The notes beneath the pieces are model-generated. The model had not been told where the DNA came from, did no database searches, and saw only the letters and a program-made list of their open reading frames with translations. This document shows positions 22,511 to 53,425 of a stretch of 64,000 nucleotides of DNA, piece by piece. The stretch comes from Phaeosaccion multiseriatum (lineage: Eukaryota > Protista > Ochrophyta, other classes). The translations under genes and the position numbers were made by a program. The stretch covers positions 5,890,001 to 5,954,000 of the forward strand of contig OZ218950.1 of assembly GCA_965112735.1 (NCBI GenBank), given 5' to 3'. The first letter of the stretch is position 1. Each line of letters starts with the position of its first letter.

Positions 22511-24168
22511 ATGGCAGAGATGGTGAGCAAGAGCTCAGTAGAGGCCGCAGAGGCTAGCGTTCCCGATGCCCGCATGGAGGAGGCGGGAGAGGTAGCAACG
22601 AATGCGCCCAAAGCAGCAGCAGTAGTCCAGAGAAGGGACGGTGAGCCAGCAGCAACACAGCATGAGCACCACCACCACCACCACCACCACGAGGGCTGCG
22701 AGCACGGGGAGGAGGATGCGCCCCCCCCCGCCATCGTGGTTCCTGGGGACGTGGTGGAGCTGGAGAAAGGTATGGAGTACCTCACCATTATCGGCACCAT
22801 CGCCGGAGTCAAGGTACGAGCGGGTAGCCGATGCTTCCGATCCCTGTCCTGCCTCCACCCCGACCTCTCTGTCCCCTACTTTACTCACCCTCCCCCCCTC
22901 CCCACCCCTAGGTGACCAAGGTGGCGGGGCTGGAAGGCCTCACGTCCCTGAAGGAGCTTACCCTCCGCTCCTGCCTCATCAAGGAGGTGGAGGGCGTGAG
23001 CACCCTCACACAGCTCACCAAGCTCGAGCTGTACGACAACCAGGTGCGTGTGTGAGTAAGGGCGTGTAGATACGGGAGAGGGAGGGGGGGTGAAGCGGCA
23101 CAGTGTCGCCCAAGAGAGTCATCTCCTGCTCCTGAGACGAGAGTCATCTCTCTCTACAAGAAAGCCTTGCTTGTCCCTCAACACTCCCTCTGCCCCCCCT
23201 TCCATGGTGATGCGATACACATCCAGATCCTGAGCCTGGGCGGCGGCTGCCTGGACACGCTGTCGCAGCTCACCGTGCTGGACATGAGCTACAACCTTAT
23301 CAACAGCATGGCCCCCGTCAAGGCTTGCCCGCTGTTGGAGGAGCTCTACATCGCACAGGTGGGTAGGTGGGTTTGGGGCTAGCAGGAAGGAAGGAAGGAC
23401 GTGTGCCGAGGTGTTGGGGGTGGCGGTCCGCTTCCCTTGCAGAGACTCACATGCTGCGGACCCTTTCACTCACCGTTGGCAGCGGCTGTGCTCTACTGCC
23501 CCGTTTAGATCGTTTTTTCATGTACTCGCATCGATGGGGCCTCCCTTGTGTGGCCTTTCCCCTTCCTTCGCTGTGCTGCTACTGTTGCTGCTGCTGCTGC
23601 TGCTGCTGCTAACCTACATACTGCTACTATATATATACTGCTGCTACTGCGCTTGCATGAGTATGATGCATGCCCTCACCTTACCCCACTCCACCCCCCC
23701 CCCCCCCTCACCTCACCGTGCAACAACACACCCAGAACTGCCTCCGCAAGATGGAGGGCCTCACAGAGTGCACTCGCCTGCGCAAGCTCGACCTCGGGGC
23801 CAACCGCATCCGAGCCATTGAGGGGCTCGACAACTGTACCGCCCTGACGGAGTTGTGGCTGGGCAAGAACAAGATTACGGCCATCGGAGGGTTGCATACA
23901 CTCACGGGCCTCATGCGTCTCGACGTGCAGGTAAGAGGAAGGGGCAAGGAGTGAGGGTTGGGGGGGGGGGGGGGGGATAGATGGCAGGGGGGAGGGAGGG
24001 GGGAAGGGGGAGGGGGATGAAGAGAGAGGAGGGGGGAAGGGGGGAAGGCATGGCTGTCGGTGGAGGCGGGGAAACAAAACGGAATCTTTGGAACGTCTTT
24101 GGAACGAAGCACAAGACGAGAAGGAGGTGGGGGGTGGCAACACGCTCGACCAAGCCAGACCAAGGCCA

Positions 24169-24219
<51 letters not shown>

Positions 24220-25270
24220 TGTGTGTGTGTGTGTGACACCACCAACCCCATCACTTGCCTATCCCCTCTCCCTCTCTGTCTTCCCTTTACTGTTTCGGAC
24301 GCCTGTTGTTCCTGCTCTCTCCTGTTACTCTTTCTCCCCTCCCCCCCCCCACACACAGAACAACCGCCTCACAGCCATCTCCGGCCTGGAGGCACAGGCC
24401 AATCTCCAGGAGCTGTATCTGGCGTGCAATGCCATCGAGTCCATATCCACGGGCCTGGAGCACGTAACGGCCCTGACCACGCTCGACGTGTCCACGAACC
24501 GCCTCACCAGTACGGAGGGCGTGGGCCACCTCACTAAGCTTGAGGATCTGTGGATGAGCGGCAACAAGGTGGCCAGCTTCGACGCGCTGCAGGTAAGCGA
24601 GTGAGTCGCCAGGATGGGGTGTTGTGTGTGTGTATGGGTGTGGGGATGGAGTGAGGGAGTGCGTCGGGTGTGGAGTGGAGTAGGCTGGAGTGGAGTTGGA
24701 CCGGGGGGGTGTGAGTGTGAGTGTGAGTGGGTCGGTGGAGTGAATAGAATGGAGTGGGTGGGAGGAGGGAAGTGTGGAAAGTAGTGGAGTGGAGTGAGGG
24801 GGTGGGAGGATGAGTGTGTGGAAAGTAGTGGAGTGGAGTGGAGTGAGGGGGTGGCAGGAGGAATGAGTGGAATGGAGTTAAGTGGGTGAGTGAGGGGGTG
24901 GCAGGATGAGTGTGTGGAATGGAGGTGAGTGAGCCAGAAATGAGACCCTGCATGATTTGGGTGTGAGCATATACAGTACGTGTTTTGCTTCGCTCCTCTC
25001 TGTGGAACATGCCTTCGTCCCTCCTGCACTTGAGACCCCGTGCACACCACACCTCCGCCCCTGCTCTTCACCCGCGTTGCCACCACCCTGCCCCGCCTGC
25101 CTCTCGCTCCTCCCCCCTCGCAGGCGGTGTCTAGCCTGCCGGCCCTGACGTGCATCTACCTGGAGCACAACCCCCTGCAGACGGAGTTCGAGTACCGGAC
25201 CAAGCTCAAGGAGATGTTCCCGCGCCTCACGCAGATCGATGCCGTCAGCTGTGGCGCCGTGGCCCGATAA
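22511..25270 (+). CDS. SDS22: Protein phosphatase 1 regulatory subunit 7 (Sds22), LRR protein, multi-exon
   Basis: SDS22-type LRRs LELYDN, LDMSYN, LDLGANRIRAIEGL, LWLGKNKI, LDVQNNRL and LRR cap IYLEHNPLQTEFEYRTKLKEMFPRLTQIDA. His-rich N-terminus; stop 25268-25270. Confidence 0.9.
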
Positions 25271-25427: not shown

Positions 25428-25600
25428 AGTGTAAGAAACGACAGTGTTGGTTTGTGGGAGCAGGGGCACTCAGAGTGTGTGGCTGCAATGTTGTTCTCTT
25501 GGAAAGGGTGCTGCTGAGAAACACCAGTATGGTTTTTTTCACTGGAGGGACTTGTCTCAGTGATCAAGGGTGGTGTTAAGAAGAAACACCAGTGTTGGTT
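25428..25600 (-). other. Three degenerate orphan histone 3' stem-loop elements (no histone CDS)
   Basis: Minus strand AACCAACACT-GGTGTT-tcttctt-AACACC-ACCCTTG at 25567-25600 matches the H3 3' end at 39621-39653; more decayed copies near 25430 and 25503. Confidence 0.6.
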
Positions 25601-25847
25601 CGTCGTCAATTGAGTGTGAGCGGCGCGTGTGATGTGGCGGAGAAAGTGGCGTCCCTCAGACAATTACATCCCAGGAGCGAAGCAGCAGCAGCAAAAGAGC
25701 ATAATGTAGTCCTCTTTGAACATACCAAAAAAGAGGGGGAGCCCTTTTTCATTGCCATACGTCTGTGTGTGGTATATTTGAAATCACAACCGCCTGCGAT
25801 AACGAGCTTGAAACGAGCACACAAGTTGGCATAGAGCAGCGCATACA

Positions 25848-26716
25848 ATGAACAGACGGGAGGGAGCATCATCAGGGGAGGCACAAGATGCGGAGGGGGC
25901 GCGACGTCTGAGCAAGGCTGTCGCGCACGACGAGGGAGGGGATGGAGGAGATGACAATCGGGGGGAGGAGACGCGGCTAATCGACGACGACGTAGCGGAG
26001 ATGGACCCAGCCAGGAGGGCAATGTTCGGTATGGCCGTCAAGGTGGAGCTCAAGCCCGGCGTATGGTGGGCTGGAGTCGTGTGCGATCCTCGCTTCGCTC
26101 CTCATCCGGTCATGGTCACGGCCCAAAAATGCCTTCCCCGAGCACAAGACCTGGTCTTCCTCTTCGGCGTCAAGTACCCATTTGTTATGGCGCCATGCTG
26201 GTGAGCGAGGTCTAATAGGGCATCAAGCAATCTGTCCGTCCCATCCGGTCTAACGAACAAGCAACGCGTCCCAATCAGGTCCATCAAGCCCTTCGATGGC
26301 GATGTGGATGTTCTTCCCGCCGCGATGCTCGAGGGCAGCGATGCGCAGGGCTGGATGGAAGGCATGGAGCAGGCAAAGAGGCATGCCTCCCTACCTGAGG
26401 AGCAGAGGATGGCGTGGATAAGAAAGGGCGGCAGGAGGAGAGGGGGGATCGGAGGAGAGGTGCGTTCGCTGCTCGACGAATTCTCCGCTCCTGTGGCTGC
26501 TTGCTCCTGTTTGTACCTCACTCTCCACTCTCTGTCCCCGCCCCGCAGCGAGCACACAATCGCATGCTCCAATTCTACCGGAACCTCGACCAAGACCGGT
26601 CGGCGGCGCCGCTGCTGAGACCGAAGGCACAGCGTCCCGATGGCACCCCTGTGACGCCGCTCGTGACGGCGCTCGCCAGACCTCCGCCAAAGAAGCAGAA
26701 GCGCGCTCCTGGCTGA
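25848..26716 (+). CDS. Short PWWP-domain protein with C-terminal NLS (3 predicted exons, ~230 aa)
   Basis: Exons 25848-26200, 26279-26459, 26549-26716 join in frame: VKVELKPGVWWAGVVCDP...LVFLFG...WSIKPF (PWWP pattern) ...PPPKKQKRAPG*. Confidence 0.6.
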
Positions 26717-28780
26717 GAAGGGCATGGTAGGCAGTCTTGGTGACGGGCTCGGGGGAACAAGCTGTGAGTGAGGGAGCTAGTGAGTGGGCTAGTAGGGCAT
26801 GGGTGGCGTGGATGGGTGGGTGGGTGAATGCGTGTGTGGGTGTCTGGGGGTGTAGGTGCATGGGCAGGACATCGACATTGGTATCGAGGAGGTATATTTC
26901 GGTCTAGTTCGGGATGGTGGGCGGGAGGGTATCGGGTCAGTGACAAGGCCGTGCCGTGTATGGGAGGCAAAAGAGATAAGAGCAAGGGCATAGAGGACAG
27001 TCCGACAAGGACAAGGACATAATCAAGGGAGTGGTATTGGACATTAGCGACGTCTATCAATTACATATCAACTCTTATGCACATCGTAGAGAACTTGGAG
27101 TGAGCGGTAGGCCACAACGTGGCTACTGAGAGCGGTTCCGGGAAGGGTCGTCTCTGCCCTTGGCTCGGAGGCTAACAGGGGGTGGGTGGGTGGGTGGGTG
27201 GATGAATGCGTGCGTGGGTGGGTTCGTGCGTGCGTGGGTGCGTGGGTGGGTGCGTGTGTGGGTGGATGAATGCGTACGTGGGTGGGTTCGTGCGTGCGTG
27301 GGTGCGTGTGTGGTGCGGGGTGTGGGGGTGGGTGAGTGAGTGAGTGTGTGGGTGGGTGGGGGTGTGGGAGGTGGGTGGGTGAGTGAGTGGGTAGGCGGGT
27401 GGGTGGGGGTGTGGGGATGGGTGAGTGCATGGGTGCGTGTGTGGGTCGGTGCGTGAGTGAGTGCGTGCAGTAGGTCTGTGTGATAGCTTCAGGGGGGGGG
27501 GGGGAGAGTGTGGCAGCCAGGACAGCGCTCCGGCGGGTGATAGACGGGGGGGGTGCAAGCGAACCGTCTTGCTTGTAAACAGAGCGGCTGTCCATTTTGG
27601 GAAGGGCGGGAAGCGGAACACTCGCAGACCACGCGAGTAACAAATGAAGACACGTTTTTGCACACCAGCAGCAGCACAGCAAGCAAGAGGCTTGGATGCC
27701 CATGGAGAGGTGTGGGGGTGGTTGTGTGAGTGAGTGGGTAGGTGGGTGGGTGGGGGTGTGGGTACGTGGGTGGGTGGGTGCGTGCGTGGGTGGGTAGGTG
27801 CGTGCGTGGGTGGGTAGGTGCGTGCGTGGGTGTGTGATGGGGGGTGTGGGGTGTAGGTGCATGGGCAGGACATCGACATTGGTATCGAGGAGGTCTATTT
27901 CGGTCTAGTTCGGAATGGTGGGCGGGAGGGTATCGGGTCAGTGACAAGGCCGCGTAGGAGGCAAAAGAGATCAAAGCAAGGGCATAGAGGACACTGTGGC
28001 AAGTGTATAGACAAGGACATCATCAAGTGAGTGGTGTTGGACACTAGCGACGTCCATTAATTACATACATTTCCACTTGATCAACTCTTATGCACGTCCT
28101 AAAGATCTTGGAGGGAGCGGTAGGCCACTACGTGGCTACTGAGAGCGGTTCCGGGAAGGGTCGTCTCTGCCCTTGGCTCGGAGGCTAAGAGGGAGTGGGT
28201 GGGTGGGTGGGTGGGTGGGTGGGGGTGTGGGTACGTGAGTGGGTGCGTGCGTGGGTGTGTGGGTGCGTGCGTGGGTGGATGAATGCTTGCGTGGGTGGGT
28301 TCGTGCGTGCGTGGGTGCGTGCGTGGTGCGGGGTGTGGGGGTGGGTGAGTGAGTGAGTGAGTGAGTGTGTGGGTAGGTGGGTGGGGGTGTGGGGGGTGGG
28401 TGGGTTAGTGAGTGGGTAGGTGGGTGGGTGGGGTGGATGAGTGCGTGGGTGCGTGTGTGGTTGGGGGTGTGGGGGTGGATGAGTGCGTGGGTGCGTGTGT
28501 GGGTGGGTGCGTGAGTGAGTGCGTGTAGTAGGTCTGTGTGATAGCTTCAGGCAGGGCGGGGAGGGCGTGGCAGCCAGGACAGCGCTCCGGCGGGTGATAG
28601 ACGGGTGGGGTGCAACAAGCGGCCCGACTTGCTTGTAAAGAGAGCGGCTGTCCATTTTGGGAAGCGGAACACGCGCAGACCACGCGAGTAGCAAATGAAG
28701 ACAAGAAGTATAGCAAGCAAGAGGGTTGGTGCCCATGGAGAGAGTGAGGGCGAGGGGGGGGGGTGCGTGACTCTCGTCGA
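26717..28780. repeat. GT-rich spacer with duplicated complex blocks Y (26850, 27852) and X (27474, 28531)
   Basis: Block X recurs at 33048, 36179 and 37408, block Y at 36760; separated by (GTGG)n/(GTGC)n/(GTGA)n tracts. Confidence 0.8.
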
Positions 28781-28860
28781 ATGGGTGGTGTAAAGAAACA
28801 ACAGTGTTTGGTTCGTCAAGGGGAATCACGCGGTGCACGTCGCATCTCTTTCAAAAGGGT

Positions 28861-28876
28861 GGTGTGGAGAAACACC
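28861..28876 (-). other. Orphan H4-type 3' stem-loop with ~45 nt of H4 3'UTR but no H4 CDS
   Basis: Minus GGTGTT-TCTC-CACACC (one mismatch); flanks match 33300-33435. Confidence 0.75.
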
Positions 28877-29181
28877 AGTGTTGTTGTTTTGTGTTGACGC
28901 CCTTGACGCTCACAACAGAAAGCCGGGTCCCTCAGTCAATCACATCCCAGGAGCGAAGCAGCAGCTAAGTATACATGTAGTCCTCTTTGGCAACCGAAAC
29001 CTCGCTTACGCTCAAAAGTTTTGTGCTCCTGCTCACAGAGGACTATAGCTATAGTCAGAGGGGGAGCCCTTTTTCACTGCCATACATAAATCTCTGTGTG
29101 TGTGTGGTATATTTGAAATCACAACCGCCTGCGATAACGAGCTTGAACGAGCACACAAGTTGGCATAGAGCAGCGCATACA

Positions 29182-32100
29182 ATGAACAGACGGGAGAGAG
29201 CATTATCAGGGGAGGCACGAGAGGCGGAGGGGGCGCGACGTCTGAGCAAGGCTGTCGCGCACGACGAGGGAGGGGAAGGAGGACATGACAATCGGGGGGA
29301 GGAGACGCGGCTAATCGACGACGACGTAGCGGAGATGGACCCAGCCAGGAGGGCCATGTTCGGTATGACCGTCATGATGGAGCTCAAGCCCGGCGTATGG
29401 TGGGCTGGAGTCGTGTGCGATCCTCGCTTCGCTCCTCATCCGGTCATGGTCACGGCCCAAAAATGCCTCCCCCGAGCACAAGACCTGGTCTTCCTCTTCG
29501 GCGTCAAGTACCCATTTGTTATGGCGCCGTGCTGGTGAGCGAGGTCTAGTAGGGCATCAAGCAATCTGTCCATCCCATCCAGCCTAACGAACAAGCAACG
29601 CGTCCCAATCAGGTCCATCAAGCCCTTCGATGGCGATGTGGATGTTCTTCCCGCCGCGATGCTCGAGGGCAGCGATGCGCAGGGCTGGATGGAAGGCATG
29701 GAGCAAGCCAAGAGGCATGCCTCCCTACCTGAGCACCAGAGGATGCGGTGGATAAGAAAGGGCGGCAGGAGGAGAGGGGGAATTGGAGGAGAGGTGCGTT
29801 CCCTGCTGCCCGCCGCAAACTCTCTGCTTTGTAAGTACCTCACTCTCCACTCTCTATCCCCGCCCCGCAGTCAGCACACAATCGCATGCACCAATTCTAC
29901 CGGAACCTCGACCAAGACCGGTCGGCGGCGCCGCTGGTGAGACCGAAGGCACAGCGTCCCGAACATGGCGCCCCTGCGATGCCGCTCGTGACGGCGCTCG
30001 ACATGGCTGAGGAGGAGGAGGTTGGCGAGGTCCGTAATGCAGCGGCGCACCTGCCCTGCATGTTAGACAAAGCAGCAGGGGCAAGAGCAAGAGAGAGACC
30101 GGCCAAAAGCATGGTGAGGAGAATGGGGGGTTGCTTGGGGCGGCGGAGCACCGGTTGGTGTTTCCTTCTTCTTCTTCTTCTTTCGCTTGCTTCTGGCGGT
30201 GAGATGCATACTCACATGGCTACCACCCCCATTGCCGTCGATTGCGTACATACCGCAGCAGCAACCACCCGAGGGGTTCTTCGTCTATGTGGAGCTGTAC
30301 GCCGATGCCCAAGGAAGGGAAGGCCCTTGCGTCCTTTCCTGGGCCGAGTGGCCGGAGCTCGAGAACGACAGCGCGCGAGGAGGCCGCCGGCACCGCTGCC
30401 CCCTCGCCACCCGGCATCATCAGTGCCAATAGCAGCGGCGACGAGGGCGACAGCGCGCGAGCACCTCCACCCCCCCGAGCCGAAGCCAATCCAGCACGAG
30501 ACGGAGCAGCGGCAGTAGCCACAGCGACCCCACCGCCGACAGCAGCATTGACAGCACCACCCGCACCAGCCGCTCAAGCAGCAGCGACACCCTGTGAGTC
30601 GGGCAGCGGCATCGGAGCAGCTCCGTCACCAGAGGAAAGCGGCACGGGCAGCATCGGAGCAGCGACAGCTCCATCCACAGCACCTTGCGACTCCTCCAGC
30701 GGGGCGGCTGCAGCGTCAGGAGACCAGCACTACGGTGGCGACAGCAGCGACGACAGCGACGACGACAGCGGCGATGACAAGGCGCCCTCGGGAGCAGGGG
30801 GCGGGCCTTCGATGCGCCGCACCTCCTGGGCTGCATGCGAGAGGAAGCGCAAGCCAGCAGGGCAGGAGAGAGCCCCCGCCACTGCCACCCCGCCAAAAGC
30901 GCCTGTGGAGGTTCAGCAGCTTTTTGAAGGGCGGCAGGTCCTGGCCAACCCCTGCCCTGGCCCGGGGAGCCCACTGCAGCGTAGTCGCCCTGATGAGCAG
31001 ACACTGCACCCCCTCTTGGATCGCTTCTGCGCGCTAAAGGTAGGTTTGTGGCACTTGCTTGTGGGCAGCTGACTCACTACACACAGCCACAACACACACA
31101 CACAGCCACACGGCCGGTCGCCTCCTTTGTGTCCCCAACAAATACTAACACAAAATCATGTTCCTCTGCCTTGCTTGCTTGTTCAGGCTCTTAAGGATCC
31201 CAACGCCATGGCCACTCTGCTGCCCATAGTGTCCATGAACACTCTCCTCCACTGGTGCGACGACCTGTCGCCGGGGAAGTTGGACATGCTGTGGAATTTG
31301 CGCCGCCCGGACGAAGGCAAGGCCTTGGCCCCCGAGCAAGTCGTAGGACTCGGTTGCGAGAACGTTCCTCAGGATACTAGCGTCGTCTATTTCGCCTGGC
31401 CATCCGTGGAGCAGGGGGATCGGGACAAGACTCCGGAGAAGGTTCTCGCACTGCTGAGGGAAAATGTGCCTGGGATGGACAAGTATGACACCGTGGGCGA
31501 GGCGGTGCTCAAGCTCATCGACTCCTTCGAGCCAGAGAATGGAGGACGCATGACGGGAGGAGGCAAGGTGGGCACCACCAGGCACCATGGCGGCCGTTTT
31601 GGAGTGTACAACACGAGCGGCCCGCTGCAGCACCTGCTCCTACTCGCCAAGAAGCTGGGCCTTGCCGACTACTTCTCCCTATATTACGTCGTCCTCTTCC
31701 ACGCTGTGGAGCTCTATTCCCCCTACCGCGACACGTCCTCGGACGAAGAAGCCACCAAGCGCAAGGACAACCAAATGGTCTACCTCGAGGCCATCGAGAC
31801 CACCTGCGCCGCCATCATCGGCCTCCAGTGGCTCCCCGCCTTTGCGCGCTTCGGCCGCTTCAGTGGAGGGGGATCATGCAACAACAACGACACCCCCCCC
31901 TTCACCATCAAGGCTCAACACCTGAGCCGCAGCAGCAGCAGCAGCAGCAGCAGCGGCGGTGGTGGTAGCAGCAGCAGCAGCAGCAGCGGCGGTGGTGGTG
32001 ATAGCAGCAGCAGCGGTGGGGTGACGAAGAAGAGGAAGGTGTGCAGCGTAGCAGGCTGCGACAAACGAGCGAGAAAAGGCGGCCTTTGCGACAAGCACGG

Positions 32101-32395
32101 GGGCCAGAGGAAGAGGAAGCTGTGCAACCACGGCGGAGGAGGCCGCTGCCCCAACCTGGCCGTCAAGGATGGCGTGTGTGTGCAGCATGGCGCCACTTTA
32201 AAGCGGTGTAGGGTGGACCACTGTGACAAGTCTGCCAAGAAGGGCGGTCTGTGCATTCGCCATGGGGCCCCTGTGAAGCGGTGCAGCGTACAAGACTGCG
32301 ACAAGCTCGCCCAGCAGGGCGGAGTGTGCCGCAGGCATAGCAGCAGCAGAGAGGAGGGACCTCCGCCAAAGAAGCAGAAGCGCGCTCCTGGCTAG
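29182..32395 (+). CDS. Long PWWP + T5orf172/GIY-YIG-like domain + 4 C-x4-C-x9-C-x2-H (WRKY19-like) zinc fingers + NLS; possible frameshift near 30375
   Basis: PWWP exons paralogous to the 25848 copy. Last exon 31187-32395 has SVVYF...KVGTTRHHGGRFGVYNTSGP...YLEAIE, then CSVAGCDKRARKGGLCDKH-type repeats and PPPKKQKRAPG*. Confidence 0.55.
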
Positions 32396-33377
32396 GCTGA
32401 GAGGGGCATGGTAGGCAGTCTTGGTGACGGGCTCGGGGTAGCAAGTTGTGAGTGAGGGAGGTAGTGAGTGGGTTCGTGGGGCATGGGTGCGTGGCTGCGT
32501 GGGTGAGTGGATGCGTAAGCGCGGATGGGTGCGTGGGTGGATGTGTGGGCGGGTGTGGGGGTGGGTGAGTGAGTGAGTGAGTGGGTAGGTGGGTTGGGGT
32601 TTGGTTACGTGAGTGTGTGGCTGGGTGGGTGTGGGGGTGGGTGAGTGAGTGAGTGGGTGGGTGGGTGGGTGGGTGGGTTCGTATGTGCGTAGGTGGGTGT
32701 GTGGGTGGGTGTGGGGGTGGGTGAGTGAGTGAGTGGGTGGGTGGGTGTGTGAGTGGGTGGGTGGGTGGGTGGGTGGGTGTGCGGGTGGATGGGTTGGGGT
32801 TTGGGTACGTGGGTGGGTGCGTGCGTGGGGGGGTGCGTGTGTGGTGCGGGGTGTGGGGGTGGGAGTGAGTGAGTGAGTGAGTGTGTGGGTAGGTGGGTGG
32901 GGGTGTGGGGGGTGGGTGGGTTAGTGAGTGGGTAGGTGGGTGGGTGGGGTGGATGAGTGCGTGGGTGCGTGTGTGGTTGGGGTTGTGAGGGTGGGTGAGT
33001 GCGTGGGTGCGTGTGTGGGTGGGTGCGTGAGTGAGTGCGTGTAGTACGTCTGTGTGATAGCTTCAGGCAGGGCGGGGAGGGCGTGGCAGCCAGAACAGCG
33101 CTCCAGCGGGTGATAGACGGGTGGGGTGCAACAAGCGGCCCGACTTGCTTGTAAAGAGAGCGGCTGTCCATTTTGGGGAAGCGGAACACGCGCAGACCAC
33201 GCGAGTAGCAAATGAAGACAAGAAGTATAGCAAGCAAGGGGCTCGGGTGCCCATGGAGAGAGTGAGGGCGAGGGGGGGTGTGCGTGACTCTCGTCGATTG
33301 GGTGGTGTAAAGAAACAACAGTGTTTGGTTCGTCAAGGGGAATCACGCGGTGCACGTCGCATCTCTTTCAAAAGGGT

Positions 33378-33393
33378 GGTGTTGAGAAACACC
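33378..33393 (-). terminator. Histone mRNA 3' stem-loop of H4 copy 1
   Basis: GGTGTT-TCTC-AACACC (6-bp stem, 4-nt loop) followed by ACCC, ~70 nt after the stop codon. Confidence 0.85.
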
Positions 33394-33463
33394 AGTGTTG
33401 TTGTTTTGTGTTGACGCCTTGACGCCACAAAAGCGGTGTGCGAGGCGAAAAGAGAGAACGCGT

Positions 33464-35980
<2,517 letters not shown>

Positions 35981-36274
35981 TGGGGGTGGGTGAGTGAGTG
36001 AGTGAGTGGGTGGGTGGGTTGCGGTTTGGGTACGTGGGTGGGTGCGTGCGTGGGTGGGTTGGGGTGTGGGTGGGTGCGCGCGTGGGGGGTGTGGGTGGGT
36101 GGGTGGGTGGGTGCGTGGGTGCGTGGGTGCGTTCGTGCGTGCGTGAGTGAGTGAGGGAGGGAATGAGTGCGTGCAGTAGGTCTGTGTGATAGCTTCAGGG
36201 AGGGTGCGGCAGCCAGGACAGCGCTCCGGCGGGTGATAGACGGGGGGGGTGCAAGCGAACCGTCTTGCTTGTAA

Positions 36275-36498: not shown

Positions 36499-37737
36499 GT
36501 AAACAGAGCGGCTGTCCATTTTGGGAAGGGCGAGAAGAAGCGGAACACTCGCAGACCACGCGAGTAACAAATGAAGACAAGTTTTTGTACACCAGCAGCA
36601 GCACAGCAAGCAAGAGGCCTGGGTGCCCATGGAGAGGTGTGGAGGTGGGTACGTGGGTGAGTGGGTAGGTGGGTGGGTGGGGGTGCGGGTACGTGGGTGG
36701 GTGGGTGCGTGCGTGGGTGGGTAGGTGCGTGCGTGGGTGTGTGATGGGGGGTGTGGGGTGTAGGTGCATGGGCAGGACATCGACATTGGTATCGAGGAGG
36801 TCTATTTCGGTCTAGTTCGGGATGGTGGGCGGGAGGGTATCGGGTCAGTGACAAGACCGTGCCGTGTATGGGAGGCAAAAGAGATAAGAGCAAGGGCATA
36901 GAGGACAGTCCGACAAGGACAAGGACATCATCAAGGGAGTGGTATTGGACACTAGCGACGTCAATTAATTACATATCAACTCTTATGCACATCGTAGACA
37001 ACTTGGAGGGAGCGGTAGGCCACTACGTGGCTACTGAGAGCGGTTCCGGGAAGGGTCGTCTCTGCCCTTGGCTCGGAGGCTAAGAGGGAGTGGGTGGGTG
37101 GGTGAGTGGGGGTGTGGGTACGTGAGTGGGTGCGTGCGTGGGTGTGTGGGTGCGTGCGTGGGTGGATGAATGGTGGGTTCGTGCGTGCGTGGGTGCGTGT
37201 GTGGTGCGGGGTGTGGGGGTGGGAGTGAGTGAGTGAGTGAGTGTGTGGGTAGGTGGGTGGGGGTGTGGGGGGTGGGTGGGTTAGTGAGTGGGTAGGTGGG
37301 TGGGTGGGGTGGATGAGTGCGTGGGTGCGTGTGTGGTTGGGGGTGTGAGGGTGGGTGAGTGCGTGGGTGCGTGTGTGGGTGGGTGCGTGAGTGAGTGCGT
37401 GTAGTACGTCTGTGTGATAGCTTCAGGCAGGGCGGGGAGGGCGTGGCAGCCAGAACAGCGCTCCAGCGGGTGATAGACGGGTGGGGTGCAACAAGCGGCC
37501 CGACTTGCTTGTAAAGAGAGCGGCTGTCCATGTTGGGGAAGCGGAACACGCGCAGACCACGCGAGTAGCAAATGAAGACAAGAAGTATAGCAAGCAAGGG
37601 GCTCGGGTGCCCATGGAGAGAGTGAGGGCGAGGGGGGGTGTGCGTGACTCTCGTCGAATGGGTGGTGTAAAGAAACAACAGTGTTTGGTTCGTCAAGGGG
37701 AATCACGCGGTGCACGTCGCATCTCTTTCAAAAGGGT

Positions 37738-37753
37738 GGTGTTGAGAAACACC
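37738..37753 (-). terminator. Histone mRNA 3' stem-loop of H4 copy 2
   Basis: GGTGTT-TCTC-AACACC, identical to copy 1. Confidence 0.85.
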
Positions 37754-37823
37754 AGTGTTGTTGTTTTGTGTTGACGCCTTGACGCCACAAAAGCGGTGTG
37801 CGAGGCGAAAAGAGAAAACGCGT

Positions 37824-39504
<1,681 letters not shown>

Positions 39505-39630
39505 ATGCCTTCTTCCTTTGCCCTCTGTGTGATGAGATCCATCGAGTAGCTCCGGGGATGAGAGAGACCTCTCAACTCTTTTTGTCCACCTACTGCCTCC
39601 ACACGCACGACAAGGCAACCAACCAACACT

Positions 39631-39646
39631 GGTGTTTTTTAACACC
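39631..39646 (+). terminator. Histone mRNA 3' stem-loop of H3
   Basis: GGTGTT-TTTT-AACACC followed by ACCC, with AC-rich 5' flank. Confidence 0.85.
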
Positions 39647-40639
39647 ACCCTTGCACTCGAGATTCTTGCCCTTCCTCCTGCTGCCTCTCTCTCTCTTTCT
39701 AACACCACCCCTCCACCTCTTGTGGCTTGCCTACCACCCACTCGCCCATTTCCATGCCTCAGCTCGCCCCCCCGTACGCTCTGGCAGCTTGTGTCGTAGT
39801 GCTTCTTCCCCTTCATCTGACTGCATCCCCCATTCGCTGCAGCACAACTCGTGATCCATCACCCTCTCGCTCACACTATCTCACGCATCACACTGACTCA
39901 TTCACTCGTCATGCATGCACTCCCCTCACCCACTCACTCACCTCTCTCACTCACTCACACTCGAGGAGGGAGTTTCGGTACGGCACCCTGCTTCGGGGCA
40001 CCATGCCTGCCAACGAAGCAGCGACCACGCTGGACTGGGGACTCATGGGGGTTGCTTCTCACGGATGCGGCACAGGGAGCCAAGCCGTGCCCAACAACCA
40101 ACTCCGTATGCGTACGGCACTGCTGATAGCACTTTTGAGTCCTACATTCTTGTATTTGGTATCATGTACACTAATTAAAAAATAGAACTCACGACACTCA
40201 CCCTCGTGCACACATTCACTCTATGCCCCCCCTGTGGTTTGTCGTGCTATCGAGTGAGCATCGGCCCCTCTCGCGGCCTGTGCCAACACGACACAAGAAC
40301 ACAATGCCACGACTTTAACTCATGCGGCTCTCATCGCAGCGACCCCCTTCGCTGTTTGTTGCCACCGGGCTGATGCACTTCCCTTTCACTTCTCCCACCG
40401 AGCTGATGCAGCCCTCCTTCTGCTCTCCCATCCTCCTTTTCCTGCGCCATCTCTACAACTCCTACTGCTACTTTTCCTCCGTTTCCTCCTATCCCTCCAG
40501 CTCCTGCCCCGCTCGAAACGCAGACAGCAGGGACTCATACCTGTAGCGGGCTGCATCTACCACTTCTGCTCCTCCTCCTCCTTCTCCCCATTGCCTAGGC
40601 TTCGGCGGCCCTCTGCCTCCCGTATCAATGGCATGTCAT

Positions 40640-41367: not shown

Positions 41368-43188
41368 TCAAAGATAGTACTCCACCCTGAGCCCCTCGGG
41401 CAGATCTGCGGGCAGCGGGCACTGCCTCCCAACCTTGAGATACTGGAGGCCAGCAGGCAGGTCCGTCAATGGACAGGTGTATCTAAATCCCAGCGTCAGC
41501 CTCCGCAGAGACGCAGGGAGCTGCAAGGGCTGCTCAAAGCCGGGCCCCATCACCACCTCCTCCACACCACAAGGAAGCATCAACTGCTGATTGAACGCCG
41601 AGTACCTGCCGAAGGTAAGCCTCCTCAGCGAGGGAGGGAAAGCGACGGGTCTGTTAAAACGCTTCCCGAATGTCACCTCCTCCAGCGAGCTCGGCAGGAT
41701 CACATCAGGCTCATTGAACGCCGAGTCCAAGTCGAAAGTCCTCAGCGAGGGAGGGAAAGCGATGGGTCTGTTAAAGTCCCTCCCGAATGTCACCTCCTCC
41801 AGCGAGCTCGGCAGGATCACATCAGGCCGATTGAACGCCGAAACCGAGCAGAAAGTAAGCTTCCTCAGCGAGGGAGGGAAAGCGATGGGTCTGTTAAAAC
41901 GCTCCCCGAATGTCACCTCCTCCAGCGAGCTCGGCAGGATCACATCAGGCTGATTGAACGCCGAATACAAGTCGAAAGTAAGCTTCCTCAGCGAGGGAGG
42001 GAAAGCGATGGGTCTGTTAAAGTACTCCCCGAACGTCACCTCCTCCAGCGAGCTCGGCAACAACACATCAGGCTGATTGAACCGCGAGTTCTCAGCAAAA
42101 GTAAGCTTCCTCAGCGAGGGAGGGAAAGCGATGGGTCTGTTAAAGGCCCACCCGAACGTCACCTCCTCCAGCGAGCTCGGCAGGATCACATCAGGCTGAT
42201 TGAACTGCGAGATACCGGAGAAAGTAAGCTTCCTCAGCGAGGGAGGGAAAGCGATGGGTCTGTTAAAACCAAACCCGAATGTCACCTCCTCCAGCGAGCT
42301 CGGCAGGATCACATCAGGCTGATTGAACGCCGAAAACAAGTCGAAAGTAAGCTTCCTCAGCGAGGGAGGGAAAGCGATGGGTCTGTTAAAGTACTCCCCG
42401 AACGTCACCTCCTCCAGCGAGCTCGGCAACAACACATCAGGCTGATTGAACAGCGAGCCCTCAGCAAAAGTAAGCTTCCTCAGCGAGGGAGGGAAAACGA
42501 TGGGTCTGTTAAAGTCCTTCCCGAATGTCACCTCCTCCAGCGCGCTCGGCACGATCACATCAGGCTGATTGAACGCCGAATACAAGTGGAAAGTAAGCTT
42601 CCTCAGCGAGGGAGGGAAAGCGATGGGTTTGTTGAAGTTCTTCCCGAATGTCACCTCCTCCAGCGAGCTCGGCAGGATCACATCAGACTGATTGAAAGCC
42701 TCAGAGAAGAGCACACGCTTCGCGGACCGTGGCAAGATGGACAACACTTTGACAACGAGAGCCTTTTTAGGGGCAGAACGGCCGCGTCCATTCTGGGCGC
42801 CGAGACGCACGGCGGTCACGCAAAATGAGCGCCTCTCCTTTCCCGGCCCAGTCTCTCTGCGCTGTGAGCTCTCGGGCAGCTGGCGCCGTGCCCTTCCCTT
42901 TGCCCGCTTCCCCCGCCTTTCGAGCGCATCCTGATCTGCAGCAGCTGCAGACCTAGTCCCCGACCAAGAAGACGAAGATGCAGCATGGTGCTTCTCCTCG
43001 TCTTTCTGCTGCTGCTCTTTCAGCATTCTAAGCATGCGCCTCTTGACATCACGAGGCATGTCGGCCCTAAGGACCAGAGTGCGGCACGTGAGCTTGTCCA
43101 CCTCCCTGCACAATCCCCACAGAGCCTTGAGTGTCGGGAAAAGGCTGGCCACAGTACTCAAGGCCCGCGCTCCGCAGGTATCACTCAT
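41368..43188 (-). CDS. FNIP-repeat (LRR-like) protein 1, 606 aa, 9 x 41-aa modules
   Basis: Module FNQPDVILPSSLEEVTFGxxFNRPIAFPPSLRKLTFxxxSx; start MSDTCGARAL is shared by all three paralogues; uninterrupted CDS. Confidence 0.88.
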   Translation of the reverse strand: MSDTCGARALSTVASLFPTLKALWGLCREVDKLTCRTLVLRADMPRDVKRRMLRMLKEQQQKDEEKHHAASSSSWSGTRSAAAADQDALERRGKRAKGRARRQLPESSQRRETGPGKERRSFCVTAVRLGAQNGRGRSAPKKALVVKVLSILPRSAKRVLFSEAFNQSDVILPSSLEEVTFGKNFNKPIAFPPSLRKLTFHLYSAFNQPDVIVPSALEEVTFGKDFNRPIVFPPSLRKLTFAEGSLFNQPDVLLPSSLEEVTFGEYFNRPIAFPPSLRKLTFDLFSAFNQPDVILPSSLEEVTFGFGFNRPIAFPPSLRKLTFSGISQFNQPDVILPSSLEEVTFGWAFNRPIAFPPSLRKLTFAENSRFNQPDVLLPSSLEEVTFGEYFNRPIAFPPSLRKLTFDLYSAFNQPDVILPSSLEEVTFGERFNRPIAFPPSLRKLTFCSVSAFNRPDVILPSSLEEVTFGRDFNRPIAFPPSLRTFDLDSAFNEPDVILPSSLEEVTFGKRFNRPVAFPPSLRRLTFGRYSAFNQQLMLPCGVEEVVMGPGFEQPLQLPASLRRLTLGFRYTCPLTDLPAGLQYLKVGRQCPLPADLPEGLRVEYYL

Positions 43189-44023
43189 GTTTCTCAAAGG
43201 ATGAGTCTCGAAAAGAGAAGGCACAAAAAGAAGGGGGGAGGAAGGAAGGATGGGGCACAATAGTATGTCAATTACCCGGAAGGCATCCGGCCCTTGCATG
43301 TCAATTACCCCTATATATGTTAGTAGGACCGAAATCATTGGCTGGGGCACGAAGCGCTTGCGGAAGCTTGAGGAAAACACAGTGAACTCGGGATTGGGCA
43401 GCTGAGAGCGTGCTCGCAGCAGCTTTGTGGCAAGAACTAGCGGGTGAGCGGAAAAGGTGCGTTTTTCTCCAACCTTGGTTTCGATAGAGAGAGAGGACGG
43501 AGGGGGGTATACCCATAGAGATAAGCCGTGGGCAAGATAGGATCTCTTCTCCAGGAGTATACGAAACTTTTCATATGCAACGCATGCTCTTGCGCCTCCA
43601 GCTCGTCGGCAATTTGGCCCCTGAAGTTAGGGTACTCCACCTTCACAGTTGCATGTCTCTGAGACGTGGACGCTGCTCTATTCTACCCATTTTCAGGGCC
43701 CATCAGGGCGTCATCTCGTCCACCGGACACGTCTGATGACCCCCGTACCGCCGCTGTCCATGGGCGGAGGGCAAGAGGTCTATCGCAGGTCGTCACCCGA
43801 GGTGGCCGAAAAGGTGAGGGCGCACGAGAAGGGGAGAGGGCGTGAGATGGAAGGCTTCGCCTGGCAGTTACGAGTGGGGCAAGGGGGATCAACATCACTC
43901 ACATACAGCCTGGCTTGTGACCAAGTTTTAGCTTCAAAAGTCATAACCCCATGCGCAAAATCGCATACGTGTACTACTCCCCTCTCTTTTGCCACGTTCC
44001 GCAGGTCGTCACGAGTGAGCAGC

Positions 44024-44857
44024 ATGCCGAAGCAGGAGGACGACGGGAAGGTCTGTACCGATCCCGAATGCAAGAGCGTGTTCACGTGGCAGGAAAGAAG
44101 GAGACGTTGCAAGCACTTTCGTGGCACAGGGGAGAGTCTGAGATGCGGAGCACATTCCCTTGCGACTCGAAAGAGACCAAGGGAGGAGGGGGGGGAGGAA
44201 AGGGAGGAGGAGAAGCGCTTCACATGCCGCTTATGCGCGAAGCAGGATACCGGGAGATGGGAAGTGGTATGTTCCGATTGCGTAGACACGTGGTGTGAAC
44301 TGCAGACAGAACTCCCGAGGCTAGAGGCAGAGAAGAACGGAAAGGAGGAGGGGCATCAGCGTCTAGCGCAAGAGTATGCAGAGGAAGTGGGAGAAGATGA
44401 TGACATGTTTGTGGACAACAGTGGCCGTCTGGAGGAGCTTCCCAAGCAGATTGGATGTTTGGCCACGGACATTTCGAGGAAGGAGAAAGGGCTGAAGCAG
44501 ATGGAGAGTGGTGTGAAGAAGCTGCTCAAGAGTTGCCTGTCTCCTTTGGAATCGACCGAGCGCAGGGTGAGGCCGCGTTCTTTCGTGGAGCTGACGTCGA
44601 GGAATGCGCAGGAACAGAGAGCGCATGTGGCAGCTGCTCTTCTGACAGCCGTCGCTGGGACGAAGGGCCGTCGTGAGGAGGAGCGGGGGGCGGGTTGGCA
44701 AGCAGGCGACCCTGATGTCTGCACGAGACCGAGTGAGACTTTCCTAGAGACCGCCCCTGGGAGCCAAGGCTCGACAGGGAGCGGGGAGGACACCTTTCTG
44801 GACTGGAGTCAGAGCGAGAGCACCACACAGAGGTCATTTCCCGCCAAAATGGCGTGA
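44024..44857 (+). CDS. Hypothetical protein with degenerate FYVE-like Cys finger and coiled coil
   Basis: KVCTDPECKSVFTWQERRRRCK...RCG...FTCRLC...VVCSDC follows FYVE spacing but lacks the HH pair; lies within the 402-codon ORF. Confidence 0.35.
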   Translation: MPKQEDDGKVCTDPECKSVFTWQERRRRCKHFRGTGESLRCGAHSLATRKRPREEGGEEREEEKRFTCRLCAKQDTGRWEVVCSDCVDTWCELQTELPRLEAEKNGKEEGHQRLAQEYAEEVGEDDDMFVDNSGRLEELPKQIGCLATDISRKEKGLKQMESGVKKLLKSCLSPLESTERRVRPRSFVELTSRNAQEQRAHVAAALLTAVAGTKGRREEERGAGWQAGDPDVCTRPSETFLETAPGSQGSTGSGEDTFLDWSQSESTTQRSFPAKMA

Positions 44858-45066
44858 CATCTCACCTGCACACTTTCGCCCCGCAGATCCTGTCACCACA
44901 CTTTCAGCTACCCAGCAACGAGTACACTACTCAGACCGTCTGCTCCGCGAAGATTCTCACCTCCCACGCTCTAAATCGTGCACAGTCCCGTCTTCCCCCC
45001 CCCCTCGTAAGCGGGTGAATGGGCCCTCACATTTCGTGTGGATAAACGAAGGAGAATCAACGCGCA

Positions 45067-45660
45067 ACGTGGCAGCAGAGAGTGGTGCTTTCGATACTGC
45101 AGAGCCTCAGCACCAACGCCTTCCTCGTCTTCCGCATGCGTGAGGTCGGCGCTGAGCATCTCCAAAAAGGCCACCAATACCGTGGGATGAATGGACACCG
45201 CCGTCAGCTCAACAGGGTCTGCAGCCTGGCGGACCTCTCCTACGCCGCGGGAGTCCAGCTGTTGGAGGAAGCTCAGGGGGCCACGCCAAGTCCAGAGGAC
45301 GGGAAGGCAGGGTGTTGCTCAGTCAGCAGTCAATGAGGAGGATCACAGCAGCTCGAGGAAGGAGGGCCGCTCGGTTGGAAGGGCGCCGCGGGACTCGCGC
45401 ATCTGTGCCCCCCCTGCGAGGTACAGGATACCATACTTCGACGAGGGCGGAGAAGGCTGTGAATTCAGACTCAACCGCTCCCTTGACCACTTCCCGCAGA
45501 GCATGTCGCACAGGGCAGGGGCAGACGGCGTGCCCGTTGCCAGTACTGCGAAGACCGACGGACTTGGTATCTCTGCCCCACATGTCGAGTGTACCTCTGC
45601 GTTTTTAACTCCAAAGGAGAGGAGTCGTGCCTCCGGAGATGGCACACCCGCAAGCGACTC
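45067..45660 (+). pseudogene. 3' remnant of a piggyBac-like transposase with C-terminal Cys-rich domain
   Basis: Frame +1 WQQRVVLSILQSLSTNAFLVFRM...RRQLNRV, a stop and frameshifts, then RRARCQYCEDRRTWYLCPTCRVYLCVFNSKGEESCLRRWH (45523-45645), the piggyBac CRD pattern. Confidence 0.6.
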
Positions 45661-47391
45661 GCTGGAGCTGCGGGATGTGCCGTCCAGAGAGGGCACTCTA
45701 CTACTTCAGGGAAAAAGCGGGAGCGGACATGTGGGCGGGGCGAGTGGACGAGGAGGCGGAGGAGGAGCCAACCGACGGCACAGCGCTCCTGCGGCAGGCG
45801 CAGGTCAGGGATGACAGGGAGGGAGGGCACAGGTAGGGGCGTCCAGAAGACACAGCCATACCGGCTCGACGACGTCGGGGGGGGGGACAGTGGCACTGGA
45901 GGAAGCCCCCACCATCACGCGCTTGCCCACCGCCGCGTAGGAGGGGGCAGCGGAGGACGCACTGGTGGTCGCGGAGGAGGAGACTGTGCAGAAGGGGAGG
46001 ACGGAGGATCTGTCTCGAGCAATTGCAGTGGTAGCTAGAAGTGGAGAAGGAAGAAGGGGGGCGGACGGAACAAGCAAGCAAGGCTCAGGGGACGAGGAGG
46101 AGAGACTCTGCGGGAGGAGAGGAGAGGCACGGGAGGGGAGGAGACGGTGCAGGGGCGGCAGTGGCGTCACGCGACAGAGCGCGTCCGCCGAGGGGCAGCA
46201 GTGGAGTCAGGTCCAGCGGCATGAGGGTCGCAGCGGAAGGAGCAGTGGTGGCAAAGCAGCCAGCAGAGGGGGTTGCTGGTCGGCATGTAGGGAAGAAGGC
46301 GAGTTCGAGACAGCCACGGCGGCGGCAGAAGGAGGCCGCGACGGTCTCGCACGAGTACTTCAGGGAGGATTCGAATGACAAGCTCGCGACGACCGCACAG
46401 CAGAGCCGGAAGCCGACAGCCGCGGATAGTGCCACAGGGCCAGCACGAAGGGGGAACAAGAGTGGAGGTGGAGGGCGCAGTCGATCGACACGTACAACGG
46501 GAGGGCCACACGCGTGTGCGGCCGCAGGTGGCGGGCAAGCGTGCCGTATGCCCATGATGGAGGAGAGACACCACAAGTGCAAGACGTGTGGTGCACCTGT
46601 GCACGCCATTTGTTGTTCTGAGATCATGGGGGTGGAGGCAGGGGAGCGGTCTTGTATGTTACGAACACTTCTCACCGCTCCCGTGAGCCACACTAGGGCC
46701 TCTGGGAGGGCACCAATACTCATATACAGCCCCTAGAAACCCACCCGCTTTAAGTGGGTCTTAGCCACAAAATGGCCTACTTTTGACTGAGCAATTCTTT
46801 TCCTTCATCCCAAATGGCCTCTTCTCGTCCCCCGTTACCCGCACAACTTTCTACACCGACTAAGGACATCTTGATCTTGCATTTTGTACGAGAGATGCAT
46901 GGGTCATCTCCGACGGGACCACCTGCATTTGAGCCTCCAAAGTTGTAGACCCACTGGAGTGGGTATATATTTATTAACTTAATAGGCATCACCTAAGAAA
47001 CTGAAAGTGTGATTGTGTGTTATAACCCCCTCTTGGTCGGGGAGGGGAGCGGGGAGAGGAAGCGGAGCCGCCTGTGAGCCAGCGCGGTGCACCAACCCTC
47101 AAAGATTGGATTTTCCGCGTGGGGGGCCAAGTGCGCGTTGCTGCTTGGCGTTGGCCCCCTTCTTCTCTCTTCTCCCCCCCGCCTCCTGCTCTCTTGCCCT
47201 CACGCCTGAGCCCCCGGAAGCAAATGAGAGATCAAATGTATTTTAATGAAGAAGAACACAATCAAAACTGCACCGAGGCCTAAAGCTTGCTCGTTCGCTC
47301 GCTCCCCCTGGTCACTCACTCACTCACTCACTCACTCACTCACTCACTCACTCACTCACTCACTCACTCACTCACTCTCTCACTCACTCAC

Positions 47392-48710
47392 TCACTGGAT
47401 TTGCTGCATGTGACACACAATCCCTACTCCGCCCTGCTCCTCCTCGATCCTTGCCGCTCCCCGCAGATGGTCAATAATGCCCAAGCCCCACCGCTCCATG
47501 GACTGCTCCTGTCCAGACAGGGGGATGGCCGGCCCTCTGGACAGGGTCTCCAGCAGCCCGTCTACGTTGCCCACACAGTCTTTTGAGTTTGGAGGGAGGA
47601 GGGAATTGTGGAAAGGGGTTCATTTTCACGCAACACCCAAAGAGGGGGGGGGGGGGGGGGGGGATTTTTTAGAAGAATATACAGGACAGCAGCAGGGAAA
47701 TAAGGCATGAGCCGATGGCAAACACTTCTACGCCTTCTCACGTCGCGCTTCACCGAACCTCAGGAAGCACTCCCCCTCCCCAGCTCAAGAGAGGGCTGTC
47801 AAGGACGAGAAAGCGGAAACTCAAACCGAGACGGGGCTCTCCCCTCTGCTGCCCTCCCATTCTCCCAACTATGCCAAAGACGGCGTGAGGGGCGGCGACC
47901 CCCTCCTGCCGATCCAGCAGGGACAGACGCTGGAAACTCAAATCAATGAACCAATCACCGAACCAACGCGCTAAACAGAGAAAAGAAGCACAGCAACCCG
48001 CCACGCACCGTCACTGGGGGGCATGTGTGGGTTGAAGAACTGCTCCAGGTGGGCGGCGTGCGTCTTGAAACCGTCGCACTGCCTCAGCAGCTTCTCCCGC
48101 TGGGCAAGGATCTCCATCTGAGGCAAGGGGGGTGGGTGGGTGGGTGGGTGAAGTATGTCAATGGGTGGGCGGGTGGGTGGGTGGGTTGGGGTGGGGCAGA
48201 AGGGTAGGTGGGTTTGAGTGGGGCAGAGGACATCGAACAAAAGAATGGCTCGAAAATCTCCCTCGGCACCCCCACCCCGCCCATATCCCTACACCTCCAC
48301 CCTGCTCTGCTCTGCCCATACACCTCCACCCTGCCCTGCCCATACACCTCTACCCTGCTCTGCCCATACACCTCTACCCGACCGTGCCCGCCCGCCTGCC
48401 CTCAGCCCCGCGTGTCTACACCGCTGACCTTGTCTGGCGGCTCCACACCAAGCCTTGACACGTCGATTAGGGCCTTCGCCGTCTCCTCCACTAGAAGGGC
48501 GAGTCGTTCCTAAAATGGGGGGGGGGGGGAAGAGCGTTTCCAATCATGACATTCCAATGACGAGCGTGATTGCCGTGAGCGAACTGAGCCAAAAGTGGCC
48601 GGCGACGAGAGAGAGACACACAGAGAGCAGGGACTCAAACCTGTAGCGGGCTGCATCTACCGCTTCTGCTCCTCCTTCTCCTCATTGCCTAAGCTTCGGC
48701 GGCGCCTGCT
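47392..48710 (-). pseudogene. Fragment of an unidentified spliced gene, co-duplicated at 51796-53340
   Basis: Exon-like pieces with splice signals: ERLALLVEETAKALIDVSRLGVEPPDK|MEILAQREKLLRQCDGFKTHAAHLEQFFNPH and GNVDGLLETLSRG...HMQQI; no coherent full ORF. Confidence 0.4.
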
Positions 48711-48731
48711 CCCGTCTCAGTGGCGTGCCAT

Positions 48732-48767
<36 letters not shown>

Positions 48768-49330
48768 GTCATCATCATTGCCCTGACTCAGAACCGGCCC
48801 CCCTCTCGTTCCGTCCTTCCTTCCTTCCTTCACTCCCTCCTTCCTTCCTTCCTTCCTTCCTTCCTTCCTTGCTTGCTTCCTTCTGCCCTTCCTCCCTGCC
48901 TCCCTGACCCCTTCCTTCCCCGCGAAGCGATGGGCACTTCCTCCGCCTACCGCTCCTCCTCTTCGGAGTCTCGGCCCCTTCTGCCCTCTTCTCCGGTGGC
49001 GGACAGGTCGCTTTCTTCCCACCTAAGCGGCAGGCAAGCAGGGAGAGCAGCAGCGAAATGAGTCAGTTCAGAGGAAGGGGGTTGCATTCAGCAGGCCTGA
49101 CTCCGACTCCGCTGACCACCACCGCCCACAGCGAGTGAGTGCAAGCCCACGCTCCTGCCTACACTGCACCTACACAGACCCCACCACTCCGCACACCAGC
49201 CTCTCTTGGCACGCACCTGGATGGGGCCTCCTCTCCTCCTCCTGGCTTGCAGAGGGCGTCTGATTCCTTCGCAACTCTGCCCCGCTTCTGATTCCTTCGC
49301 AAGGCTCGGGAAAACGGGAGAGCTTCCGTG

Positions 49331-53369: not shown

Positions 53370-53425
<56 letters not shown>

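Follow-up and report, generated by a model that had tools for sequence, protein, structure and literature searches.

A candidate PWWP-like and WRKY19-type zinc-finger gene in a duplicated and rearranged histone array of Phaeosaccion multiseriatum

Introduction

How does a gene for a putative chromatin-binding protein come to lie among histone genes, and does this position tell us anything about what the protein does? The question is raised by a stretch of 64,000 nucleotides from the ochrophyte Phaeosaccion multiseriatum (GenBank assembly GCA_965112735.1, contig OZ218950.1, positions 5,890,001 to 5,954,000 of the forward strand), referred to here as the window, in which a five-exon gene of about 920 codons at 29182-32395 on the plus strand, here called copy B, stands in an array of histone H4 and H3 genes together with two incomplete relatives, copies A and C. 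The original prediction, made from the letters of the window, described the product of copy B as a PWWP-like N-terminus followed by a central domain of the GIY-YIG (T5orf172) nuclease pattern and by four C3H zinc fingers, and it considered that the gene could be either a selfish element homing to histone loci or a dedicated regulator of them.

In the present study, copy B is best read as an ordinary gene for a nuclear protein, specific to its lineage, that has been caught up in a histone repeat undergoing rearrangement. On balance, we think it probable that copy B codes for a nuclear protein and is restricted to its lineage, that its predicted product acts as a chromatin- and DNA-binding adaptor or regulator and not as an enzyme, and that its position at the locus results from local duplication. 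The evidence comes from four sides, namely the gene model and its coding signal, the terminal modules of the protein, the central domain, and the structure of the surrounding array.

Results

Gene structure and coding signal of copy B

The exons of copy B were deduced from open frames and from canonical GT-AG sites conserved in the paralogue, and all of the introns are of the GT-AG type. The start codon, the PWWP-like stretch, the central motifs, the basic patch and the fingers were each found where the original prediction had placed them. The features of the gene are as follows.

29182-29534, plus strand: exon 1, opening with the ATG at 29182; a charged N-terminal tail (about 66 amino acids), then most of the PWWP-like core (VWWAG ... 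FLFG); GT donor at 29535 (open reading frame and sequence)
29613-29793, plus strand: exon 2; its AG acceptor (29611-29612) and its GT donor (29794) are kept in copy A
29871-30113, plus strand: exon 3, predicted, 81 codons (open frame with canonical AG and GT sites)
30259-31039, plus strand: exon 4 (three-frame translation)
31187-32395, plus strand: exon 5, holding the central domain, the basic patches and the fingers
31187-31879, plus strand: orphan central domain of 231 amino acids, the stretch proposed as GIY-YIG/T5orf172 (coding signature; no family match)
31931-32023, plus strand: Ser/Gly low-complexity run, an (AGC)n(GGY)n repeat (Tandem Repeats Finder and translation)
32027-32041, plus strand: basic patch KKRKV, resembling a nuclear localisation signal (read from the sequence)
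32042-32341, plus strand: four WRKY19-type C3H zinc fingers (Pfam Zf_WRKY19, PF24906)
32369-32395, plus strand: second basic patch KKQKR, C-terminus and stop codon (sequence; the short open reading frame of copy A has an identical tail)

Exon 2 finishes the tryptophan codon that is split by intron 1, continues with SIKPF, which would form the last strand of the PWWP-like core, and then runs into a helical or basic stretch. Exon 4 opens with a short, folded-looking stretch (EGFFVYVELY...) and passes into an acidic linker rich in Ala, Pro, Ser and Gly. The KKRKV patch of exon 5 parallels the motif that serves the SV40 large-T antigen as its nuclear import signal, and, given the two basic patches, it is reasonable to suppose that the protein is nuclear.

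Several lines of evidence indicate that this structure is coding. The open reading frame that contains exon 5 (31127-32395) runs for 422 codons, for which the likelihood of a chance occurrence at the local GC content, as estimated from base composition, is about 6e-6. The GC contents at the first, second and third codon positions of the central domain (0.63/0.42/0.78) are like those of the H4 and H3 genes of the window (0.62-0.65/0.48/0.82-0.85), with the introns at 0.52-0.61. Moreover, copies A and B have diverged by 5.1% in intron 1 and by 1.4% in the PWWP-like core, and the block in which they differ most is the intron before exon 3, including a 12-nucleotide insertion or deletion; the faster divergence of introns than of exons, together with the GT-AG sites conserved between the two copies, supports the predicted exons and introns as a real gene structure. 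Within the core (about 91 codons), four synonymous and no nonsynonymous differences separate A from B (synonymous divergence dS 0.067, nonsynonymous divergence dN 0), which shows purifying selection on this module; in the N-terminal tail there are one synonymous and nine nonsynonymous differences. As for exon 5, seven of its nine best supported read variants are synonymous third-position changes, and of the six listed inside the central domain five are synonymous.

Zinc fingers and the N-terminal module

The clearest family assignment in the protein is that of its fingers. The Pfam model Zf_WRKY19 (PF24906) matched four stretches of exon 5 (32042-32104, 32123-32194, 32207-32269 and 32282-32341) with E = 2.8e-25 and 88.2 bits against a gathering cut-off of 27 (82.9 bits when the whole exon was scanned), and every one of the four units has all of its ligands in the arrangement C-x(4-7)-C-x(8-9)-C-x2-H. 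The C3H fingers are therefore real, and both the Pfam score and the intact Cys/His ligands assign them to the WRKY19 type. A word search with exon 5, swamped by low-complexity words, returned a single finger protein, P0001 from a JGI sample, which matched via its fingers. In the literature searched, no mention of PF24906 or Zf_WRKY19 was found.

The N-terminal module is a more delicate case. PWWP domains follow a template in which G-x-x-V, an aromatic pair, D-P, F-x-F-G and I-K-P-F occur in this order. Copy B fits it across exons 1 and 2 with G-x-x-V...VWWAG-V-x-D-P...FLFG...SIKPF in the expected order, as judged by eye, and its signature is indeed atypical, as had been claimed, with VWWAG in the place of PWWP. 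In the Atlas feature search with residues 50-118 of exon 1, the ten best family-bearing matches were all PWWP clusters, the top three having values of 0.89, 0.87 and 0.84 with 184, 189 and 163 shared features, respectively. A word search with exon 1 found no relatives, and the PDB search returned noise. Taken together, the order of the motifs, the Atlas leads and the selection signal make a barrel of the Royal family at the N-terminus fairly likely.

The central domain

The 231-residue central domain was the basis for proposing a nuclease, since it carries SVVYF (about 31379-31393), KVGTT...R...GVYNTSGP (from 31565) and YLEAIE (31781), and these were taken for the T5orf172 pattern. Nothing in our searches points to a GIY-YIG fold. 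At E up to 10, neither Pfam nor PHROGs nor NCBIfam yielded a family match, whether to PF10544, PF13455 and PF01541 or to any other model; phmmer against the PDB gave noise only; tblastn against phages at E up to 10, as well as scans of IMG/VR and of two JGI metagenomes (one of them with the alignment of copies B and C), found no match; and the Atlas feature search yielded no usable one. An exhaustive phmmer (HMMER) search over 1.84 billion protein representatives likewise revealed no true relative. The sole match of that search, P0002, was rejected as an artefact inflated by tandem repeats (39 residues at 36% identity). In addition, an origin of the domain from histone sequence was considered and rejected, blastn showing no similarity.

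The arrangement of the motifs leads in the same direction. Between SVVYF (residue 65) and KVGTT (residue 127) there are 58 residues, whereas the GIY-YIG hairpin needs about 10-15, and pseudogene C, the only relative at hand, which retains HGGR, VY-x-TSGP and YLEAIE, has lost the K and the TT of KVGTT. The best conserved part of the domain between B and C is formed by the C-terminal 70 residues (66% identity), which are predicted to be helical. Thus, with library, sequence and phage searches all empty, the motif spacing wrong, KVGTT not kept in copy C and a low-confidence model that is mostly helical, the GIY-YIG/T5orf172 reading of this domain found no support.

Copies A and C and the histone array

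The remaining features of the array, in the order of their coordinates, are given below.

25548-25595, minus strand: relic histone stem-loop before copy A (weak Rfam Histone3 match, 16.4 bits, E = 4.2; alignment; inverted-repeat match to the H3 stem-loop)
25732-26833, plus strand: copy A (blastn, 92.5% identity to 29057-30003; alignment; in-frame translation)
28191-28918, minus strand: relic H4 downstream flank before copy B, 93.4% identical to 32713-33433 (some 730 nucleotides), with a mutated stem-loop at about 28836-28881
32484-33041, no strand assigned: degenerate, G-rich (GGGT)n spacer that separates copy B from H4 gene a (Tandem Repeats Finder, blastn, GC skew of +0.35 to +0.40)
33464-33775, minus strand: histone H4 gene a (tblastn, 103 of 103 residues, 33467-33775), with a 3' stem-loop at 33353-33398 (Rfam Histone3, 24.9 bits, E = 0.003, below the gathering score)
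33998-35982, plus strand: copy C (blastn, 75.6% identity to 30652-31857; tblastn pieces in alternating frames)
37824-38135, minus strand: histone H4 gene b (tblastn, 37827-38135), with a 3' stem-loop at 37713-37758
39094-39504, plus strand: histone H3 gene (Pfam Histone, E = 4.8e-48; open reading frame), with a stem-loop at 39626-39667 (Rfam, 20.3 bits)

Copy A consists of exons 1 and 2 and part of exon 3, followed by three filler bases and then by the last 12 codons. It lacks a counterpart of 30003-32357, an in-frame deletion of 2.35 kb, beyond which it is joined to the counterpart of 32358-32516; the deletion joint is also present in the reads, and the splice sites are intact. From 25848 to 26716 it may encode a mini-protein of about 233 amino acids made up of the PWWP-like module and the basic tail. 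Copy C is truncated at its 5' side, has none of the PWWP exons and begins about 220 bp upstream of the start codon of H4 gene a; its central domain carries at least three frameshifts (insertions or deletions of 2, 10 and 1 nucleotides), and by its sequence it is clearly a pseudogene. Further copies elsewhere in the genome are visible in read contigs that have different sequence before 29057 and after 32358. Position 32358 has served as a breakpoint twice: it bounds the deletion of copy A on the 3' side, and it is where a read contig that represents another copy in the genome departs into sequence absent from the window. To judge by rough read depth, the 5' part of the gene would be present in a few copies and the central domain, counted at 90% identity or above, in about one.

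The histone genes themselves are of a familiar kind. H4 gene b and the H3 gene form a canonical divergent pair (37824-39667) with animal-like 3' stem-loops behind both, and H3 closes the array; behind each of the two H4 genes and the one H3 gene the stem-loop is the best local match to Rfam Histone3, below the gathering score. Core histone genes that end in a 3' stem-loop are the mark of replication-dependent histones, and this is what was found here. Sister (GGGT)n spacers lie at 27180-28525, 35984-36153 and 37090-37401. In all of these tracts the G-rich strand is the plus strand; they have G-quadruplex potential and give rise to long, spurious, PTH-rich open reading frames on the minus strand.

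The original prediction had noted three versions of the gene alternating with H4 genes or with H4 3' ends. The alternation was recovered, and the versions turned out to be products of one local duplication and not independent observations. By blastn, the duplicated unit is made up of the gene, a (GGGT)n spacer and an H4 flank with H4, and the repeats that carry spacer, flank and H4 are 91-95% identical. Two forms of the unit occur: where the H4 body is present the gene is truncated, and where the gene has its full 5' end the H4 body is missing. The relic flank before copy B stops about 35 nucleotides short of the expected H4 stop codon, the H4 body is absent, and copy B comes next. Since A and B have this junction in common, it goes back to one rearrangement that was subsequently copied, and a single segmental duplication accounts for the histone linkage seen within the window.

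Among the open reading frames of the array (23.6-39.5 kb), no transposase, reverse transcriptase or integrase family of Pfam was matched, and neither terminal repeats nor target-site duplications were found there; the only inverted repeats are those of the histone stem-loops and of the G-rich repeats. The window is eukaryotic, at about 60% GC, and its composition is uniform (0.57-0.63 GC). Integrated giant-virus DNA was considered as a source and rejected in view of that uniformity and of the introns in the gene.

Elsewhere in the window, an open reading frame with leucine-rich repeats (23981-24601; LRR_4 and LRR_8 of Pfam) is found directly upstream of the array and probably belongs, as an exon, to an adjacent gene. 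Three long minus-strand open reading frames (670-741 amino acids) with FNIP-like repeats of about 22 amino acids occupy 41368-56144, and the reading frame at 12501-13469 has a match to Pfam RBM1CTR (E = 3e-12), which probably stems from low-complexity sequence rich in Arg, Ser and Gly.

Discussion

The findings can be drawn together into the following scenario. The N-terminal barrel, PWWP-like and of the Royal family, would dock on nucleosomes or on DNA; a long, disordered, acidic linker rich in Ala, Pro and Ser would join it to the orphan helical central domain, which is probably a protein-interaction module; the two basic patches would serve as import signals; and the four WRKY19-type fingers would contact nucleic acid. 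The gene would have come to stand in the H4-H4-H3 locus through local duplication and rearrangement of a unit made up of the gene, the (GGGT)n spacer and H4 with its flank, a process that would have left behind an in-frame mini-copy with the PWWP-like module alone (A), a full copy (B) and a decayed, 5'-truncated copy (C). As a member of the WRKY19-type finger family, the gene probably works in the manner of those chromatin proteins that combine a PWWP reader with fingers.

Several observations weigh against this account of a working gene. In the assembled copy B, the frame of exon 4 is broken near 30373, within a run of GC dinucleotides. A variant shorter by one nucleotide at 30373, found in reads from the same sample, would render exon 4 continuous. 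Three of the four runs carry it, at 30-57% of the word depth, and it is absent from the fourth; allelic variation, a paralogous copy or a mistake in the assembly could each lie behind the length polymorphism. All four runs in which the stretch occurs are of DNA, their contigs spanning the introns unspliced and without splice joints, and both the expression of copy B and the borders of exons 3 and 4 are predictions from sequence. The differences between B and C are spread evenly over codon positions (dN/dS 0.62-0.93). This is what would be expected if copy C has long been dead, and it gives no added support for constraint; as a result, the case for constraint on the central domain depends on a small number of read variants. 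The structural models were of no use in either case: the single-sequence AF2 model of the central domain reached a pLDDT of 42.7 and shows nine helices but hardly any strand, and that of residues 45-118 of exon 1, made from the alignment of A and B, reached a pLDDT of 42 with only a hairpin (19-25/28-33) predicted. Finally, Pfam PWWP (PF00855) gave no match at E up to 10 when exons 1 and 2, between which the core is split, were scanned separately. The PWWP claim of the original prediction thus stands in its motif order, its Atlas clusters and its selection signal, and it falls short in the exon-by-exon Pfam scan and in the fold model; we regard it as plausible but unproven.

Four other explanations have to be set beside the one that we prefer. 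If the central domain were a divergent GIY-YIG/T5orf172 nuclease, the protein would be a chromatin-targeted endonuclease. A loose likeness of motifs (VVY, KVG-T-T, R, YNT and a later E) speaks for it, as does, in our own unsupported reading of the sequence, the spacing of LIDSF-x12-KVGTT, which suits a hairpin better than SVVYF does; but the empty profile, phage and PDB searches, a repeat artefact as the entire yield of 1.84 billion representatives, the 58 residues between the motifs, the loss of KVGTT in copy C and the mostly helical, if low-confidence, model leave this proposal highly improbable. A different suggestion dispenses with the nuclease in that form and makes the gene itself, or an element carrying it, a selfish or mobile unit that inserts just downstream of H4 coding regions, guided by its PWWP-like module and its fingers and relying for the cut on the orphan domain or on the host. 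That A and B both begin about 35 nucleotides from the expected H4 stop codon, beside a stem-loop relic and with the H4 body missing, would suit such a unit well, and so would the other genomic copies with different flanks and the repeated use of breakpoint 32358. However, the junction that A and B have in common through duplication counts as one event; terminal repeats, target-site duplications, transposase, reverse transcriptase and any recognisable nuclease were all sought in the array and not found; the gene has introns and a host-like composition; and the rough read depth suggests few copies. We therefore hold it to be quite unlikely that an insertion unit of this sort is at work, and give the same small chance to its broader form, in which a PWWP-like/finger family repeatedly colonised H4 units, taking the place of the H4 body immediately downstream of the stop codon and leaving the 3' flank, either as a selfish gene or as a co-amplified histone-locus factor, with the orphan domain as a new activity.

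Conversely, all three copies might be decaying remnants of a dead family that has no function today and is carried along in a rearranging histone repeat. Copy C is a pseudogene, copy B has its frame break in the assembly, copy A is without two thirds of the gene, B and C have diverged evenly across codon positions, and expression of the copies is predicted from DNA sequence; all of this speaks for a dead family. Nevertheless, the 422 codons of exon 5 are intact and bear a strong signature at the third codon position, there is an excess of synonymous change in the PWWP-like core and in exon 5, a variant that restores the frame at 30373 is present in the reads, and the deletion in copy A is in frame with the splice sites intact, so that we consider extinction of the family rather unlikely. 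The gene might, on the other hand, be kept beside its target because it encodes a dedicated histone-locus factor whose fingers bind the G-rich spacer or the histone promoters, by analogy with Drosophila CLAMP at the histone locus body. It does adjoin H4 and H3, every unit has a (GGGT)n spacer, and the architecture of a reader with fingers would be apt; yet the adjacency is explained by duplication, the binding by the fingers is hypothetical, and regulators that act in trans need not adjoin their targets. A role of this kind appears improbable to us.

If copy B is expressed as a lineage-specific nuclear protein, as we prefer to think, it would represent a new combination of domains for the chromatin proteins of stramenopile algae, joining WRKY19-type fingers to a reader-like barrel and an orphan helical domain, and it would offer a tractable context for an uncharacterised finger family. 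The rearranged H4 units further illustrate how a histone repeat can carry along and remodel an adjoining gene. For a chromatin-guided nuclease homing to histone genes, there is no support at present.

The gene can be set beside several known systems. With the T5orf172 and GIY-YIG nucleases (PF10544, PF01541), copy B has a loose string of short motifs in common, and it differs from them in having no library match, in the wrong spacing for the hairpin and in motifs that are not conserved in its paralogue. Like R1 and R2 in ribosomal DNA, or Dada and Utopia in small-RNA genes, the copies sit directly against one particular point of a host gene that is itself repeated, in this case the H4 3' untranslated region, and include truncated derivatives; in contrast to those elements, no reverse transcriptase, transposase, terminal repeats or target duplications were found in the array, and both of its junctions represent one event. 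Closer to hand are the WRKY19-type proteins (PF24906), whose C...C...C-x2-H-G pattern is present in the four tandem units of copy B, although P0001 has no counterpart of the central domain and its match spans 29% of the query. The PWWP readers that also bear zinc fingers, such as ZCWPW1, ZMYND11 and the DNMT3 family, differ from copy B in that the latter has VWWAG, no PF00855 match in either exon, another type of finger and the central domain; in common with them copy B would have a reader-like barrel at the N-terminus, modules that bind zinc, and nuclear signals.

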